Below, in pieces: positions 3,832-36,187 of a stretch of DNA of 36,983 nucleotides. Location of the stretch: NCBI RefSeq assembly GCF_000315625.1, contig NW_005434621.1, positions 24,943 through 61,925 on the forward strand, written 5' to 3'. The translations under genes and the position numbers were made by a program. Numbering within the stretch: position 1 is the stretch's first letter; every line of letters begins with the position of its first letter. The stretch comes from Guillardia theta CCMP2712 (Eukaryota > Protista > Cryptophyta). A model generated the notes under the pieces. That model searched no databases, was not told the DNA's origin, and worked only from the letters and a program-made list of their open reading frames with translations.

Positions 3832-4420
3832 GCCGTAGGGAGGCCGAAGGCGTCGTTCTGGACTGCAAGGGTACGGGGATATGGGAGTTTTATTAGAGCC
3901 CGACTCGATAAATACGTGTACTAGAGCCCACTACTCATCACTCAGCTTCCCCTGTAGTGATCCGGTCACGAAAGCAGGTCACGAAGTGTCCGAATCTACC
4001 CCTCATCCCCGCATGGCCCGGGCCTCCGGCGGTCCGGCCAGTCCGGCAGTCATCAACTGCCGGTCGGCCCCGTCGATGACCAGGGGAGGGGCGGGGGGCC
4101 AGAATGGGGGGCCGAGAGTTGGAATTTTAAAATGGTTTTAATATGTCCTCGGAATCACTTCTTTTCGTCCTGTTTTGAAACCATTAGTTCCATATGACTT
4201 CTTTTCAACAATTGGTAAGCTGAAAAGGATTGCTTTCGTCCGTCGGTTTCCATAGATAAGCCTTAGGAGGTCAGAGGAACCACCTATCTGTCATAGTAGA
4301 AGTCATTCTGCTATGACCCACGGCCTAGCAATCCCTGACTGCCAATTTCGCTTACCGCCTAGGAGGTTTGGCAGGCGCATCATGAACTTGTAAAATTTTG
4401 GTGGCACTTTTGAGCACCCG

Positions 4421-4979
4421 GTGAAAAAACTTCGTGTCAGCAGTAGTCGGAAGGAGAGGGAGAAGACGAGAGGAGCTAGAAACGACGAGGGAGGGAGTGA
4501 AGGAAACAAGGAAGAACGAACACAGGGGACAGCGTACTTGTTCGCACACTTTCTGCAAGGAGGAACGTTGCTCCGAAGACTAGTTGGACGAGGAAGAAGA
4601 AAACGCCGAGAACGAAGCCGTGAACACATAACAGAATGCAAGTTTGTGACTACCTGCCAGCCATCGATGCTTGCTCGTGTCCCAAGAAGCCAGACACTGG
4701 AAATCAGACGTCGCGGTCAGATGTCCGAGACATCAAGAAACAATTTGGAATAGAAAAAGAGAGGGACGAATCTGTCGTTGAAGCACAGCAGTATTTCAAG
4801 TCCTGTATCTACAAGTGCATGCATAGCGACGAGTGCAAGTGCATGTCCTTGCCTCAGTCTGTTTATCACAAGGAACCCTCCAATGATATGCCATTTAAAT
4901 CTCTATCGACGCTCATTCTCACTAGGCTTCACAGCATATAAGATGGGCTTCACTGCAGCCTCTCAGAGCTGAACCTTAG
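4421..4979 (+). CDS. Possible small hypothetical Cys-containing protein (structure unresolved)
   Basis: Protein-like frame AIDACSCPKKPD...QYFKSCIYKCMHSDECKCMSLPQSVYHK at about 4660-4870. No convincing start codon or family. Confidence 0.25.
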
Positions 4980-9506: not shown

Positions 9507-9566
9507 AGCCTCCTCGACTCTCCTGATTGTCCTCGTACTGATTTTTAACTTAACTTTGAGTAAAGA
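9507..9566 (-). repeat. Dispersed conserved non-coding element, copy 1
   Basis: The reverse complement of 9521-9566 matches 21679-21724 at 41 of 46 nt; both copies also share a GAGTC(C)GAGGAGGCT block. Confidence 0.85.
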
Positions 9567-28827: not shown

Positions 28828-30238
28828 ACCTGTTCTCTGAATTGGAATCCATCCTCATCCTGCGGAAGCCCCAGCGGCAGACCGAGGCTAGAGAGGAAGG
28901 AGCTCATGGGGTACTTGATGAAACTTTCTCCCTCCTGCCCGGCGTCCTCGTCCTCGTCCTCTTTCCTCCTTGCGCCGTTGCAGCGAACCTTCATGTAGCT
29001 GCAGAACAGATCTCAGGGATAGGACGAGATAAGGAACTGACGATTTTGGTATGAAAATTTAGCAGGAGAAGGAGCGAGGAGCGAGGAGCGAGGAGCGAGA
29101 AGCAGGGTTGTGGCAGCATCGGCGAGGAAGGGAAGGAGAGGAGGTACCAGCAGCTGACGGCGAAGAGATGACAGCATCCTTTCGTCTTAACGAAGTACTC
29201 GAGCATGTTCGGCACCAGGTCGCCACAAGCATGCAGGCAGATCAGACCAAAGTTGTCGATGCTGCTCCTGATCCCCCCGCCATCCTCCTGCTCCTGCTCC
29301 TGCTCCTGCTCCTCTATTGCCCTGTGCTTGCCCGCTGGCATGCTGCTCGTCTCGTTCAGCTCCTCCACGTCCTCCTCCTTGCTAGCACGGTGCCGCAAGT
29401 TTCCAGCGAGGGCTGAAACGACTCCTCCCTCCCTCCATTTTATCTGGTGCTGCAGGTACTTTATGTTTGCCTGCTCCAACGTTTTGCGTTACTTTCATGT
29501 AACATCGTTCTAAGTCATCTCATCTCCGGCATCCATCAAACAAAATTTCCATCTTGTGCTTTCATACATGTTGCAGTCGTACACATATTTGCCACACACA
29601 CAAAAGTTGCATTCATACACGCGTTTGCATTCATACACGTATTTGCAACACACACTTGATCGACATTCCTATCCGATTATGATACACATGTATCACCATT
29701 TCAACGTATCTTTGCAACTTTCATACACGCGGTTTCAACATCACAACTCCTTCTGCAGCTCCTCTACAAACACGACATCTCTTCTCACAGATGCAAGTTG
29801 GGCTGACGCTGCGTCCTCACCCTTGTCCTGTCGCCGCAAGTTGAACTCCAACTCCTTCCTTACCTGGGCATCCAGCCTGTTGCAACATCAGCGATGTTGC
29901 CTAGCACTGATCTCCTTCCACTTCACCTCTTCGCTTCCTGTATGTTGTTGGGATCTTGTTCGATCCCGATCACATCGATCGACCCTCTAAGGTAAGGCAT
30001 AAGCAAGGAGGAAAGCAAGAGGAACGAGGGGAGGAGAGGACAGCAACCAGGGAGGGAGAAGTAAGAGAAATAGGAGGAGGAGGAGGAGGAGGAGAACCAG
30101 GAGGAGGGGGGAGGCACGACATGAGAGGAGGGAGCTGAGGAGAGGATCATGGCAGAGGAACTTCCTCACTTGAACGAGAGCGCCCGGCACAGGTACCCCT
30201 GACCCGACCCGATGTCCACCAGGAGCGAACGAGCAGGT

Positions 30239-30286
<48 letters not shown>

Positions 30287-31612
30287 TTGCTGCTGTTGCT
30301 GCTGTTGTTGTTGCTTCTGCTGCTGTTGCTGTTGCTGTTGGTGGTGGTGGTGGTGGTGGAGGAGGAGGAGGAGAGTGTATGATTCACGAACTGGAGGAAC
30401 ATCTCCACCTTCCTCAACAGCATCAGCCGACAGCATCCAGTATGCAGCCCCTCTGTGTAGACCTCGTGCATCTTCTTGGGTGACATGCCCCTTGCAAGGC
30501 CCTCCCCGCACCTGGCTCCACTCAAACCTCCTCCCTCCACCACCCTCCCGCCCTCACCTCATCCTGTCCCCGCAGGATGGACGAATCTTGGTCTTCCTGT
30601 CAAGGGCCAGCAGCGAGATCTGGCCCAAGAACCTCAACAACGAGGAGCAGGATTTGAGCCCTGGCACGCACGTCAGCCCGTGGGAGGAGCAGCAGGAGCT
30701 TGCGCTGGGCACCTTTGACTTGCAGCAGCTGAACCACCTCCCTTGGGTTGCTCATCCTTTCGATCATCTCGATGCAATCGCTCTCAGAGAGCTTCTGCAG
30801 CCGAGGAGCGAGCAGAAGGTGCAGGAGCAGGTCAGGCCTTCCCTTGTCATGCTAGAAAGCAAGCTCACCTCGAAAGTCTCGCGCCAGTCCGAAGGGATCG
30901 AACTCCACATGTCTTTGACGTAGAAGTCCGTGACATGTCCCTTTACCTTCAACCAGCGTCATCGAATCTTCCCCTCCCTCCCTCCCCTCCCTCTTGCGCT
31001 TGCTCTCGCTCCCCCTCCCCCTCCTTTCCTCTGCAGCAATACACAATTCTACCCACCAGGTATTCGAACTCTTCAAAGAATGCCACAAGTTGCTTCAATC
31101 TGTCTTGAATGGCCTCCTGCAAGTCAGAAGGGATCACCATAGGATCCGGGAACAAGTCGCACGAGTGTACATCAGGTGTTGTCCAGTCAATGTCTGTCTC
31201 AACATCGACGAGTCAGAGTTCTCATCAAAATCTAGAGAGGGTGGTAAAGGACGACTCAGAGCAGACCCAAGGGATCAAAGGCATGAAAAGAAGGAGTGAA
31301 TTAATAAAGGAATAAATCAACAAAGGAATGAAACGATGAACAGAGCGAAAGGAATGCAAGGGGTCAAAGGATGAAAGCAACCAAAGGAACCACAGGGATC
31401 TAAGAGGAAGTTGGTCGACCTGACGCAGCTGGCATGCTATCGTCTGTCTTGGGCCCCTCCTCCTCGTCGCAGAGCATCTCGTCTCGTACCTCCCAGCCGC
31501 CAACCCGCTGAGGCTGCTCCATGTTTCCAGGTCCCACAAGTATCCTCCTGACGCTAAAGTCTTCTCCGCTGTCTCTGCCATCGTCAAGCTCGTCAGACTC
31601 TTCAGCTTCCAT
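27436..31612 (-). CDS. METTL25/RRNAD1-family SAM-dependent methyltransferase
   Basis: HVTDFYVKDMWSSIPSDWRE, MSPKKMHEV, LVDIGSGQGYLCRALSF (motif I), LHACGDL, LRLSLAPVIESILLLDRLLFLRE and LVPIFDPLISPRNFVLAA. Start is tentative; the gene contains a gap. Confidence 0.88.
28497..28646. other. Assembly gap
   Basis: N run. Confidence 0.99.
28748..28827 (+). repeat. (CTGCTC)n hexanucleotide microsatellite, intronic
   Basis: About 13 tandem units. Confidence 0.95.
29555..29745 (+). repeat. Degenerate minisatellite (TTGCATTCATACACG-like units) within the methyltransferase gene, probably intronic
   Basis: Recurrent TTGCA / TTCATACAC / ACACAC words at roughly 18-20 bp spacing. Confidence 0.7.
30238..30370 (-). 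repeat. CAG/CAA/CAC microsatellite lying in frame within the methyltransferase
   Basis: (AACAGC)n reads SSSSSTTTTTTNSNSNS...N in the same frame as both FLQFVNHT and LVDIGSG. Confidence 0.85.
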
Positions 31613-32064
31613 TGTCGGCACGGATCTACTGACATGATCCTGCGCTGTGGGGTGACGAAACACTTGTCGCTTTCATGGGATACCAGCGATGAGACGCAGC
31701 AGCACAGGACCAGCAGGTGGCGCAGCAAACTAACTCCTGGCGTATTTGAGGAGGACAAGAGTAGGAGCCTGAGGGAGCAAGTGGTCATTGATGTAGAGGA
31801 TAGAGGGATCGCAAGGAATGGGGGCGGAAAATAGAGAGATTACAGGAGAGGCAGCAGGGAGTCCAAGGAGCAGGGAGCAGAGGGAGGGGGATGATGAAGC
31901 AGGAGGAACGCACAGAAAGAGGGAGAGAGGAGCTGGGGAAGGGGAGGGTGGGGTGGGTGGGAGCAAGAGGGGGAGCGGGCGGAGGGAAGGAGAGAGTTGT
32001 TGGAGTGGGGGCGAGCATGGCCACAGATGGCCAGGAGACTGATTTCAGTGAGGCAGACTCAGTA

Positions 32065-32305
32065 TTGACTAAAGATGTACGTAGCTCCGCTGACAATATT
32101 GACTACAAGGCCGGAAGGCGTAAGGAAATATTGACTATAAGTGTAGTGGGGGGGTTCAGAGGGTGGTAGAGGCGTTGACATTGACTAGAGCGCAATGATT
32201 GACTACAGGACCTTATATTAATTGACTATGATACCAGAAAGCTTTGACTACAATGCTTCCTTTCGACTACATTTTGACTATAGTAGTGCAGATCAAAATT
32301 GACTA
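32065..32305 (+). promoter_or_regulatory. Homotypic TTGACTA motif array between the divergent methyltransferase and 14-3-3 genes
   Basis: TTGACTA at 32065, 32099, 32131, 32181, 32199, 32222, 32244, 32274 and 32299; TCGACTA at 32263; a further copy at 32600. The regulatory role is inferred from position. Confidence 0.7.
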
Positions 32306-32619
32306 CAAGGGTGATACGGCCACACCGGCCCCCTACGTTGAAAACAAAAGTATTTTAACTTTCTTCCATAAGTAGAAATACTAAATCTGTATATAAATTT
32401 CTCGAAGAAATAAAAATGTATTAAGTTGCTGATGAGTATAGATACCAAAGCTTCTCTTGTACCAATATGTTTAAAATTTTATATCATATACCACCAAGAC
32501 TCAGCTTTTGTATTACAACATACCAATTTTAGTTCTGTAGTACAAAAGTTGCTGCCAGGAACCTCTAATACTGTTTTTAAAGACCCGCAGGGTTCATTCT
32601 TGACTATAGTACAGGCGCG

Positions 32620-33348
32620 ATGGCGGAGGATCGGCAGCAACTAGTGTTCATGGCGAAGCTCGCGGAGCAGTCGGAGCGATACGACGAGATGAAGGAAGGA
32701 ATGATGCAGATTGTTGAGCTCGGCCCTCAGCTCACCCTTGAGGAGAGAGAGATGCTCTCCATCGCATACAAGCATTGTGTCGGCAACCGCCGTACCTCGT
32801 CCCGTATCATTTCAGCGATGGAGGAGAAGGATGCAAACAAGAAGGACCCGGACAGCTTGGAGAAGATCAGGGAGTACAGGGTGAAGGTGGACGAAGAGCT
32901 GAAGTTCCTCTGCGAGGAGATCATCAGGCTCCTCGATATGAAGCTTATCCCCAACGCGGCCGATGATGAGAACTTGGTCTACTACAACAAGATGAAAGGA
33001 GACTACTTTCGCTACCTTGCTGAGTGCCTCCCAGAGCCTGATCGCTCCAAGTACGCTGAGAGCTCAAGAGCTTCCTACCAGACCGCAAGCGAGATCGCAG
33101 AGAAGCTGTCTCCTACCAACCCCACCCGCCTTGGACTTGCCCTCAACTACACTGTGCTGCAGTTCGAGGTTCTGAAGCAGACCGAGGAGGCGTGCAAGCT
33201 CGCCAAGAAGGCCTTCGATGATGCGATCGAGCAGGTGGACTCGCTGGACGAGGCTCACTACAAGGAGAGCTCGACCATCATGCAGCTCCTGCGCGACAAC
33301 CTCACAACCTGGACAGCGGACATGCACGTCTCTACAGCTGATGAATGA
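32620..33348 (+). CDS. 14-3-3 protein, divergent paralog with an intronless CDS
   Basis: 242 aa ORF containing AKLAEQSERYDEM, KMKGDYFRYLAE, PTRLGLALN, AKKAFDDAI and IMQLLRDNLTTW. Confidence 0.98.
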   Translation: MAEDRQQLVFMAKLAEQSERYDEMKEGMMQIVELGPQLTLEEREMLSIAYKHCVGNRRTSSRIISAMEEKDANKKDPDSLEKIREYRVKVDEELKFLCEEIIRLLDMKLIPNAADDENLVYYNKMKGDYFRYLAECLPEPDRSKYAESSRASYQTASEIAEKLSPTNPTRLGLALNYTVLQFEVLKQTEEACKLAKKAFDDAIEQVDSLDEAHYKESSTIMQLLRDNLTTWTADMHVSTADE

Positions 33349-33478
33349 GAGGTAGGGGGTTGCATCCCAGGGGAACAGATCGTCTTTGCAAGCTCGTGAC
33401 CTCTCTTGCGATTTCAATTTTGAATAACATGAAGCAGCATGGGTGCGCCTGTCCCGTCCCGTCCCCTCCTCTAGGGCT

Positions 33479-34524
33479 CTAACCGTGCAGGGGCTCGGAG
33501 CTCTTTGCGTTCGGATCGAACTTGTCTGTGTCCTCCCAGCAATCTGTCATCAGACCTGCTCGTCCAACTTCAGCTCGCACTCGCTCCTTGCCCCCATGGT
33601 GAACCTGACCTGCGCTCTCCGCTGTTATCGAGACCCCTCTACAGAGGAGGTGGTAGTCGTGCGAGGGAGCAGAAGCTTGTTCTTCCCCTGACCTCTCGCT
33701 CGATCTGCCGCCTCTCACGCACTCCATAATGACGTCCCGCAGTGCCTGCGTCGTTGACATGTCACTGTTAGCAAGTAACACCAACTCAGCCAGTCATGAT
33801 CACCTCAGGGAAGTTGTTCATGCCGTGAAAGCCCGGAAAGTAGTTGAGGTCAACGATGTAGAACTCATTCGTGTCTGAGAGCGATGAAAAATCATCATGC
33901 TTGTAGACTTGTGCCAGCGTGAAACCTCGTCTGCGAACGACGTCGACGCCGAACAGCCGAGGGGGGCCAGGCGGGTCGTGGTTGAACTCCATGGCGATCG
34001 CCTGGCATATCAGATCCCGAATCGCCGTGAGGGCAGAGGCTGAGGGGACGCGTCAGGAGAGGCGTGTACAGGAGGAGGCGACTTGACCCGGCAACTTGGT
34101 CGCGTCGGAGATGGTCTTCCTGTAGTCCTCAGAGTTCTCTTGCTGCAGTTTCCTGGAAGCTCTTCAGCATCTGGGGAGCAGGGGGAAGGCGGCATGCCTG
34201 GCGATTGCGTCGGACGAGACACGAGAAAAGGGGAGGAATTTCTCCCTGCTGCCAAAGTCGTTGGGGATGGACGGCCTGCGAGATGTGAGGCAGCGTGGAG
34301 GTTTGAAGATGATCGAGGTCATCATAGACAACAAGATCAACTCTTGACAAAAGTCCTCACAATCATCAAAATCAAAATCAAAATCAAATCCAAAACCAAA
34401 GTCATCGTTCTCATTCTCATCTCCTCCTCAGCCACCACCACCATCACTAGAACCATCACCACCACCACCATTACCATCATCATCACCATCACTAGACCAT
34501 CATCATCACCATCATCATCGTCAT

Positions 34525-34556
<32 letters not shown>

Positions 34557-36187
34557 TCACCACCACCACCACCACCACCACCACCACCACCACCACCACC
34601 ACATGGTGTTCATCAGATCTCTACCTGTGAATGACACATAGCTGCGATCCAACGCAATAGATCTGTCCATCGGATAACCATCATCTCTACCTTCAAAAAC
34701 ATTAGATCTCTCTCTCTCACCTTATAGATCATCTTGTTGTGGGGCACAAACTCCTGGCATCGATGTAAGGAGAAAACAGATGTCTGGCGTCAGGTCACCT
34801 GCACTAGACATGGCACAATTTTGTGCAATCTTTTCCTGATCTCCTCAAGTTCCCAGGCAATGAACAAGTCGTGGGAGGAAGCTCTACAGAGGAAAGAAAG
34901 AACTCACATTCTGTGAGCAAACTCGAAAGTTCCCCACCGCCCATCATCGTACACAGGTTTGATCACAACCTGAAAATTGTTCATTGAGAGCTCAGAGAGT
35001 AAGAGACCAGAAAACCGGAAGATTCATCGAATGGTTCTTGAAAGCAAACTCGACGTCAGCTCCATTCTCCAGCACGAAACTCTTTGGCATTCTAGCCAAA
35101 AGAAATTGATGCTACGATCGACTAGAATGGAAAGAAAACGTATTACCTGATTGACCAGTGGAAGTCTCCAACTTCTTCCTCCTTCGCTTTCAGTTCCACC
35201 TCATCCTGTCCTTCCCTTCTTCCCTTGTCCTGCCTCTCCCTCTGTCCCTCTCCCTCTCCCGTGTCCTCCAGACTTCCTTGAACAGCATGACAAGGATCTA
35301 GTTTAGGACAGCAACGCAGGAAGTCCATCCCCTGAGCTCTGATCGTCTCCTGCATCCTTGAAACAACCTGCAGGACAAACAGTGAGGGCATGGAGTCGTT
35401 CAAGATTCAGAGTGCAAGTATTATTCACAGCAATCAGGCGTGAACATCTCTAACTACCACACCAAACAGGCAAAAGATCTCTCAACAATCAAACAAGAGG
35501 ATCGGTCAACAACCCTGGGCCTGGAGCTCATGAATCTCTGCAGCCTCATCGGATCGAGGACGGGGACGCCTTTGTTGCGCTCCTCCCACCTGGACGACCA
35601 AGACTCTCAGAGCATGGCAGAGGAGGCGCGTCATTGCTCCGCGCACTCATCCTCCCTTCACCTCTGCATCTGATCCACCAGCCTCTGCTTCTCCACGGAT
35701 TCTTCCTCGCAAGCAAACAGATGCCTAGCATGAGCATCACTGCCGTCAGCCCCCGTCCCCCCTTTCCCAGTCTTCACTGCTGGCTCACTGCGAATGGCTG
35801 AGGAGTACGGCTCCGTCCCATCTCCCTGGCGCCGCTCCATCCATCTCGAGGTCCTCGAAGCTTCCGCATGCCATGTCAGCATCATCGTCAACTGATCTCC
35901 TCCATGCCTCTCACTCACTTCACTCGGATCCCCCTTGCCGCAAAGCTCTGCTGAAGGTGTTCCAGGATCCGTTTCTTCTTCTGAGGAAGAACGAGGCCGA
36001 TGCGCATCGGTTGCCGCACCGGCGACGAGTTGTCGTGCTGCGATGAAGAGACGCCATGGCTCCTCAGCCTCGGGACCAGGCGATATGAGACACCATGGGA
36101 GGATCCCTGGGATGCCGGCGTCTCTCGGGCCTCGCGCAGATTGTTCGGATCGCTGCTGCTGCATTCATTCCTCCTGAAAGAATACAT
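33479..36187 (-). CDS. ITPK1: Inositol-tetrakisphosphate 1-kinase / Ins(1,3,4)P3 5/6-kinase (ATP-grasp)
   Basis: RIGLVLPQKKKRIL, VVIKPV, QEFVPHNKMIYK, RPSIPN, LFGVDVV and FYIVDLNYFPGFHGMNNFPE. The start may extend into the gap at 36219. Confidence 0.87.
34362..34602 (+). repeat. (ATCAAA)/(ATC)/(ACC) microsatellite complex in an ITPK1 intron
   Basis: Tandem tri- and hexanucleotide runs. Confidence 0.9.

Follow-up and report, generated by a model that had tools for sequence, protein, structure and literature searches.

The window, by which we mean the whole 36,983-nt stretch of Guillardia theta DNA analysed here, contains a full-length, intronless coding sequence for a 14-3-3 protein of 242 aa on the plus strand (32620..33348; Pfam PF00244, E = 8.8e-85). 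The closest solved relatives of this protein are 14-3-3 epsilon, and a metagenome scan with it retrieved no relative. Its left neighbour is a Methyltransf_32-like gene on the minus strand with exons across 28991..31663: the Pfam match lies at 28991-29479, the open reading frame at 30166-30543 contains the SAM-binding motif VDIGSGQGYL, and the first exon is likely to be 31400-31663. As this gene is encoded on the minus strand and the 14-3-3 gene on the plus strand, the array of short words described below is situated between head-to-head genes, in an intergenic stretch of about 1 kb, with the 14-3-3 gene on the motif-strand side. Low-complexity tracts rich in GA/CT pervade the window; open frames in the region of the methyltransferase-like gene (29987-30543, minus strand) encode a run of about 45 Gln together with Asn/Ser runs, and an open frame downstream of the 14-3-3 gene (34083-34634, plus strand) encodes a run of about 40 His. 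Comparison with the Rfam families gave no match of note in 31000-33500.

The 241 nt from 32065 to 32305 of this intergenic region carry, on the plus strand, nine exact copies of the word TTGACTA (starting at 32065, 32099, 32131, 32181, 32199, 32222, 32244, 32274 and 32299) and one copy of the one-base variant TCGACTA (32263-32269), separated by unrelated spacers with start-to-start distances of 34, 32, 50, 18, 23, 22, 19, 11 and 25 nt. A further plus-strand copy, the eleventh if the variant is counted, is found at 32600-32606, starting 20 nt 5' of the ATG at 32620 and leaving a gap of 13 nt. Our recount reproduced the copy numbers, strand and spacings of the array reported in an earlier, sequence-only reading of this DNA, as well as its additional copy 20 nt before the ATG. 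The window as a whole has 11 exact copies, all on the plus strand and 10 of them inside 32065-32606, and the minus strand of the 37 kb has none. In dinucleotide shuffles of the window, copies numbered 2.4 on average and never exceeded 6, and none of 100 shuffles reached 11. Furthermore, based on the genome-wide count given below, about 0.009 occurrences are expected per 241 nt per strand, so that the nine exact copies (ten with the variant) are far beyond chance. The GC content of the array is 0.41, compared to 0.53-0.59 in the flanking DNA. Immediately to its left lies a purine-rich low-complexity tract (31800..32015), the counterpart of which is pyrimidine-rich on the motif strand in most other arrays. 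To its right lies an AT-rich tract (32330..32590, plus strand; GC about 0.3), which the sequence-only reading had also described and which we confirmed, with a GC content of 0.34 over the first 300 nt after the array, falling to 0.25 in the lowest 150-nt segment.

Genome-wide counts in the G. theta assembly (87,145,349 bases in 669 contigs) revealed 3,301 + 3,280 occurrences of TTGACTA (6,581 on both strands of the 87.1 Mb), or approximately one per 26 kb per strand. The reversed word, used as a control, is commoner, with 9,159 occurrences; hence, it is the clustering of TTGACTA alone that is unusual, the genome showing no preference for the word as such. This clustering is apparent in the overlapping triples, sets of three copies with 4-34 nt between neighbours: we counted 89 of them, whereas the reversed control gives 29 and the frequency of the word would lead one to expect about 0.01. 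It is equally apparent in the pairs: 217 same-strand pairs were observed at 11-41 nt (about 8 predicted from word frequency; 68 for the reversed control), alongside 30 convergent (control 10) and 16 divergent pairs (control 8). Once merged, the triples represent about 33 arrays of at least three copies whose spacers are unique, plus seven true or near-tandem arrays on contigs 8, 11, 12, 86, 151, 158 and 227. The locus is thus not the unique occurrence that the sequence-only reading had allowed it might be. With its nine exact copies and one variant, the array in the window is the largest of those with unique spacers, followed by a seven-copy array at C3:72.8 kb.

The copies at different loci agree beyond the seven invariant bases. 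Over 82 copies from 20 other loci we observed a flank bias in agreement with that of the window, namely ATA at positions -3 to -1, Y at +7 (76/82), A at +8 (58/82), R at +9 (60/82) and slight further bias at +11 to +14, amounting to a footprint of approximately ATA-TTGACTA-Y-A-R with about 12 informative nucleotides. Distances between neighbouring copies are also unevenly distributed: of 82 listed pairs, 35% have a spacing of 19-23 nt, and the distribution shows a second hump at 29-33 nt and a minor one at 40 nt. When tested for periodicity at 9.5-11.5 nt (Rayleigh test), the distances gave p = 0.014 under a flat null and p = 0.003 under a smoothed null (R = 0.29); helical-turn spacing is accordingly a preference with modest phasing and no strict rule. 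The spacers of the window's array align with each other no better than their own shuffles (p = 0.6), and TRF at its lowest threshold detected nothing in 31950-32700. These two results rule out a decayed tandem repeat, which the sequence-only reading had named among the outcomes that would undo its interpretation. In an all-against-all blastn comparison of the 21 array loci with 4-kb flanks, only low-complexity matches were recovered and nothing was common to the loci other than the word. The idea that the arrays are parts of a transposon or MITE was rejected for these 21 loci, given the want of common flanks and of an inverted partner array in the window.

Gene neighbourhoods were studied for these 21 arrays, comprising that of the window and those of the 20 other loci. 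Gene calls were made from open reading frames and Pfam matches, with exons searched singly, rather than from transcripts, and a strand classifier based on codon usage, which is confounded by the GA/CT-rich low-complexity tracts, served as a rough guide. Most of the arrays are located between head-to-head genes or on the start side of a gene, and none clearly lies between two gene ends. Among eight Pfam-confirmed right-hand neighbours, that is, genes on the motif-strand side, seven (including the 14-3-3 gene) read in the direction of the motif; genes with this orientation encode Snf7 (L031), a TIG-domain protein (L040), a ubiquitin fusion (L043), zuotin/DnaJ (L045), the Mtr4 helicase (L046) and a WD40 protein (L050). 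A long right-hand open reading frame of 845 aa at L034 likewise reads in the motif direction. The exception is the Pfam-confirmed ion-channel gene at L048, which has its 3' end towards the array, and at L033 and L049 the right-hand gene, as judged by open reading frames, is also opposite in direction; sense orientation is therefore a tendency and not a rule. The array-adjacent downstream genes have no obvious common function. The suggestion of the sequence-only reading that the element is strongly inducible finds no support in these neighbours, which are of housekeeping types (14-3-3, ubiquitin fusion, Snf7, zuotin and Mtr4). The ATG lies about 60-90 nt past the last copy at L040, L041 and L043, and the gap to the gene is 300-450 nt in the window and at L031, L034, L045 and L050. 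Open reading frames start within 60 nt of arrays in 24-33% of cases versus 14-16% at random positions, and at 7 of the 21 loci an ATG-initiated minus-strand frame opens no more than 60 nt from the first copy, versus 14% at random positions, a mild enrichment that is partly confounded by the GA/CT-rich tracts.

Several arrays adjoin YACCCC words and GC-rich islands. Islands of the 'GGCCCGGGCCGG' type, bounded by TTTGAGTAAAG and GAGTGAC or their complements, adjoin the arrays L032, L033, L035, L046 and L047 and are also present at L013:1900-2100 and at 9540-9565 of the window. The window element at about 9540 carries the word AACTTAACTTTGAGTAAAG, which is also found in array-adjoining GC-rich islands, and no copy of the element as a whole (9507-9566) was detected in the intergenic region between the methyltransferase-like and 14-3-3 genes. 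At L042, about eight tandem units of approximately 57-60 nt (GCATATGCGAGCACGGGCGG...GATGCAAGGCATGCGGGGGCAGCA) are situated downstream of the TTGACTA array (4250-4700, oriented coordinates), and these possibly code for a Cys/His-rich repeat.

The AT-rich tract between the window's array and the 14-3-3 gene is peculiar to this locus: downstream of the 20 other arrays the minimum GC content is 0.31-0.55, not differing from that on their upstream side, compared to 0.25 in the window, so that a layout of repeats plus AT-rich tract is no property of the class. The tract contains a consensus TATA word, TATATAAAT, at 32390-32398, candidate GT donors in or near it at 32311, 32350, 32372, 32418 and 32436, and upstream ATGs at 32416, 32432 and 32467, which are flanked by ATG-free stretches at 32254-32415 and 32468-32619. 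As automatic intron finding by codon scores gave mostly false positives, six introns of conserved genes were instead curated by hand, namely two from the ubiquitin gene (L043), three from the WD40 gene (L050) and one from the Snf7 gene (L031). All have GT...AG ends, and in four of the six the motif YTGAY is present with its A 11-13 nt before the G of the terminal AG. Short introns of 43-54 nt with YTGAY are seen at L043:4236-4627 and L050:4531-4772 (oriented coordinates). It is possible, therefore, that the G. theta genome employs a fixed branch-site distance, with the A of YTGAY at -11 to -13. The A of the eleventh TTGACTA occupies position -12 relative to the G of an AG (32613-32614) that itself lies five bases before the ATG; a second acceptor candidate, formed by CTAAT, a run of T and an AAG ending at 32582, lies within the tract. 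We accordingly favour the view that the AT-rich tract comprises an intron of about 180-300 nt in the 5'UTR, which would end at the AG 32613-32614 and for which the eleventh copy may serve, or double, as the branch site. Such an intron would give the array a distance from the mature ATG comparable to that at L040, L041 and L043. The tract might alternatively, or additionally, be a core promoter with TATATAAAT at 32390, which we consider less likely. The branch-site reading of the eleventh copy furnishes a rule on intron ends in the G. theta genome that is open to testing, namely YTGAY 11-13 nt before the AG.

Certain loci provide hints as to how the arrays arise. On contig 93, about 14 kb separates two paralogous arrays that are inverted relative to each other (C93:158722-158959, minus strand, and C93:172647-172753, plus strand). 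All three cores common to both are intact, 5 of the 54 spacer bases are different (about 9%), and one unit has been gained or lost between them; the pair may represent an inverted segmental duplication or mark the two ends of a large element. An apparently young array at L016:1300-1700 (C11:988.2-988.5 kb) retains 27-nt and 18-nt units that are still nearly identical, along with the variant words GTGACTA and TTGACTC and YACCCC-rich surroundings, and looks like an array in the making. Furthermore, in several true tandem arrays TTGACTA heads units of 26-37 nt. Taken at face value, the arrays seem to grow by local duplication and afterwards to retain the word alone, as would be expected if the word were under selection.

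The same observations could be read to mean that the arrays are a neutral by-product, either a decayed minisatellite or a remnant of the subterminal repeats of a mobile element, with no function at present. The true tandem arrays with TTGACTA on contigs 8, 12, 227 and 151 would be in keeping with this, as would the still alignable L016 array and the unit gained or lost on contig 93, which indicate that arrays do grow by duplication. However, nine of the ten cores in the window's array are identical and its spacers are at shuffle level, a combination that requires the core, and nothing else, to have been subject to selection or conversion. Moreover, 33 independent loci have the core and its flanking bases in common and nothing else, the window lacks an inverted partner array, and the arrays are located on the start side of genes; hence, we see only a slim chance that they are functionless. 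A comparably slim chance attaches to a chromatin or architectural role, in which the arrays would exclude nucleosomes or form boundaries between head-to-head genes by virtue of DNA shape or an abundant architectural protein. The arrays are indeed AT-rich islands (GC 0.27-0.44) in DNA of GC 0.5-0.6 and in their majority lie between divergent genes, but an invariant 7-mer with defined flanks speaks for base-specific recognition, and some 33-100 loci are too few for a general promoter architecture. The sequence-only reading had also likened the layout to an initiator array with an unwinding element, that is, a replication-origin-like module of iterons beside an AT-rich tract. This layout fits at the locus in the window alone, and bacterial or phage-type arrays of TTGACTA at a regular 22-23 nt do exist in metagenomes (L070, L094). 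In the iterons of plasmid and phage origins, conservation extends along the entire unit of 17-22 nt and the spacing is even, and an initiator gene lies beside them in a small replicon. The arrays described here resemble them in that the repeats are direct, tend to be spaced about 21-22 nt apart and, at the window's locus, have an AT-rich neighbour, but differ in lacking full-unit conservation, even spacing, an initiator gene and a small replicon. Their units, irregularly spaced at 11-50 nt, agree over just 7-12 nt, the AT-rich tract does not recur at the 20 other arrays, the DNA is nuclear, eukaryotic and flanked by two ordinary genes, and a total of about 33 sites falls far short of the number of origins that 87 Mb of chromosomes would need. 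An origin is thus extremely improbable, and the earlier comparison is not supported.

A different alternative is that the element acts at the level of RNA, with the array or its 3' part belonging to the non-coding first exon or leader of the 14-3-3 gene and UUGACUA acting as branch-site-like decoys, or as sites for an RNA-binding protein, that control splicing of the leader intron or translation. TTGAC matches the branch consensus YTRAY, and the eleventh copy sits exactly at the position that YTGAY occupies in four of the six curated introns. At L040, L041 and L043 the ATG follows so closely upon the array that transcription start sites may lie in or just after it, and about 80% of neighbouring pairs genome-wide share a strand. 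However, the four ATGs inside the window's array (32075, 32195, 32228 and 32253) would be awkward in a leader, the arrays L033, L048 and L049 are without a downstream gene of the same sense, and within the word a YAG follows just 6 nt past the branch A, as opposed to the 11-13 nt of real introns. Furthermore, inverted pairs of the full motif are themselves 2-3 times above controls, which points to recognition of double-stranded DNA rather than RNA. We therefore regard an RNA-level element as unlikely. As to the identity of a DNA-binding factor, the sequence-only reading had proposed an enhancer for a WRKY-like or unknown factor. Our analysis supports the part of this proposal that takes the array, which is non-random and recurs elsewhere in the genome, for a probable cluster of factor sites; it does not support the WRKY-like factor. 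TTGAC(C/T) is the core of the plant W-box bound by WRKY factors; TTGACT, which matches this core, lies inside every exact copy, and clustering is a further feature shared with plant W-box clusters. However, six-frame searches of the whole genome recovered no match at E <= 0.001 to the WRKY, FAR1, FLYWCH or GCM domains (PF03106, PF03101, PF04500 and PF03615), a result from which domains split by introns could escape and which hence falls short of proving absence. In addition, the invariant A after TTGACT and the Y-A-R tail are foreign to the W-box. A W-box enhancer bound by a WRKY-type factor is consequently very unlikely.

Another family deserves consideration as a source of the factor. Members of the TALE homeobox group in animals and plants recognise a TGAC core, and the potato BEL5-POTH1 pair reportedly binds tandem TTGAC sites. 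Sites of the MEIS, KNOX and BELL proteins resemble the arrays in that a TGAC/TTGAC core occurs in direct repeats, and it is this similarity of words alone that links them to TTGACTA; a TALE homeodomain protein may therefore be taken as a lead. We detected matches to the TALE homeobox at seven places in the genome. The best of these (69 bits; C53:2297-2416, plus strand) is on the same contig as the window, about 22 kb to its left, a proximity that implies no link to the array.

Similar words were also sought outside G. theta. A metagenome scan with three extended words returned more than 119 stretches, 80 of which were read. These were either satellites of constant period or operator- or iteron-like arrays of bacterial or phage type, and none of the 80 was a unique-spacer array in eukaryote-like DNA, which says nothing for or against the presence of the class in other cryptophytes. 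L098:3200-3320 has four palindromic, operator-like TTGACTATAGTCAA sites, and the regular 22-23-nt repeats of L070, from a human-gut metagenome, and of L094 are iteron- or operator-like; all three are unrelated to the algal arrays. So far, then, the class has been observed in the G. theta genome alone. A literature search found no description of the TTGACTA word or of any cryptophyte nuclear promoter element.

Based on these lines of evidence, we propose that the array is probably a cluster of identical putative binding sites for a single sequence-specific DNA-binding protein, positioned on the start side of genes. The arrays display the features by which homotypic clusters are recognised: at least three copies of a motif far above chance, spacers unrelated both within and between loci, and a non-coding, start-side position. 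According to this proposal a protein would bind the array, thereby affecting transcription, and would serve one of the two flanking genes. The unit it recognises would span about 12-18 nt, in which a weak ATA precedes the invariant TTGACTA and Y-A-R follows it, trailed by faint further signal. The favoured intervals between starts, near 21 and 32 nt, would correspond to about two and three helical turns and would bring many of the sites onto the same face of the helix, which might favour cooperative occupancy. The occurrence of the same kind of array at about 33 places on the start sides of genes would mark a small set of similarly controlled genes. Homotypic site clusters are already known as a kind of element. 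Like the Gal4 UAS sites and the Bicoid site clusters, the arrays place many copies of a short word with unrelated spacers within a few hundred bases on the non-coding start side of genes, recurring at many unrelated genes; the word, its strong one-strand polarity and the organism are new by comparison. Another parallel is offered by the SAG1 promoter of Toxoplasma, with its repeats carrying WGAGACG. There, too, a short lineage-specific word is repeated directly upstream of a gene without a classical promoter layout, but the units are true 27-nt tandem repeats, whereas the spacers of the TTGACTA arrays are unique and differ in length.

As a more speculative extension, which we regard as possible rather than probable, the TTGACTA arrays might be the cis-element of a cryptophyte-specific regulon, bound cooperatively on one face by a lineage-specific factor (possibly a TALE protein) and providing the functional core of compact promoters, many of them bidirectional. 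In combination with the YACCCC arrays they might then constitute a promoter grammar of "word arrays" undescribed in other eukaryotes. To our knowledge, almost nothing is known of how cryptophyte nuclear genes are activated, with no promoter element having been defined, and we know of no established genetic tools for Guillardia. A rare, sharply defined word that is almost confined to arrays on the start side of genes thus provides a handle on cryptophyte nuclear promoters. The arrays may serve as bait in pull-downs of the factor, delineate a candidate set of co-regulated genes, and supply a compact candidate promoter for the development of tools in Guillardia.
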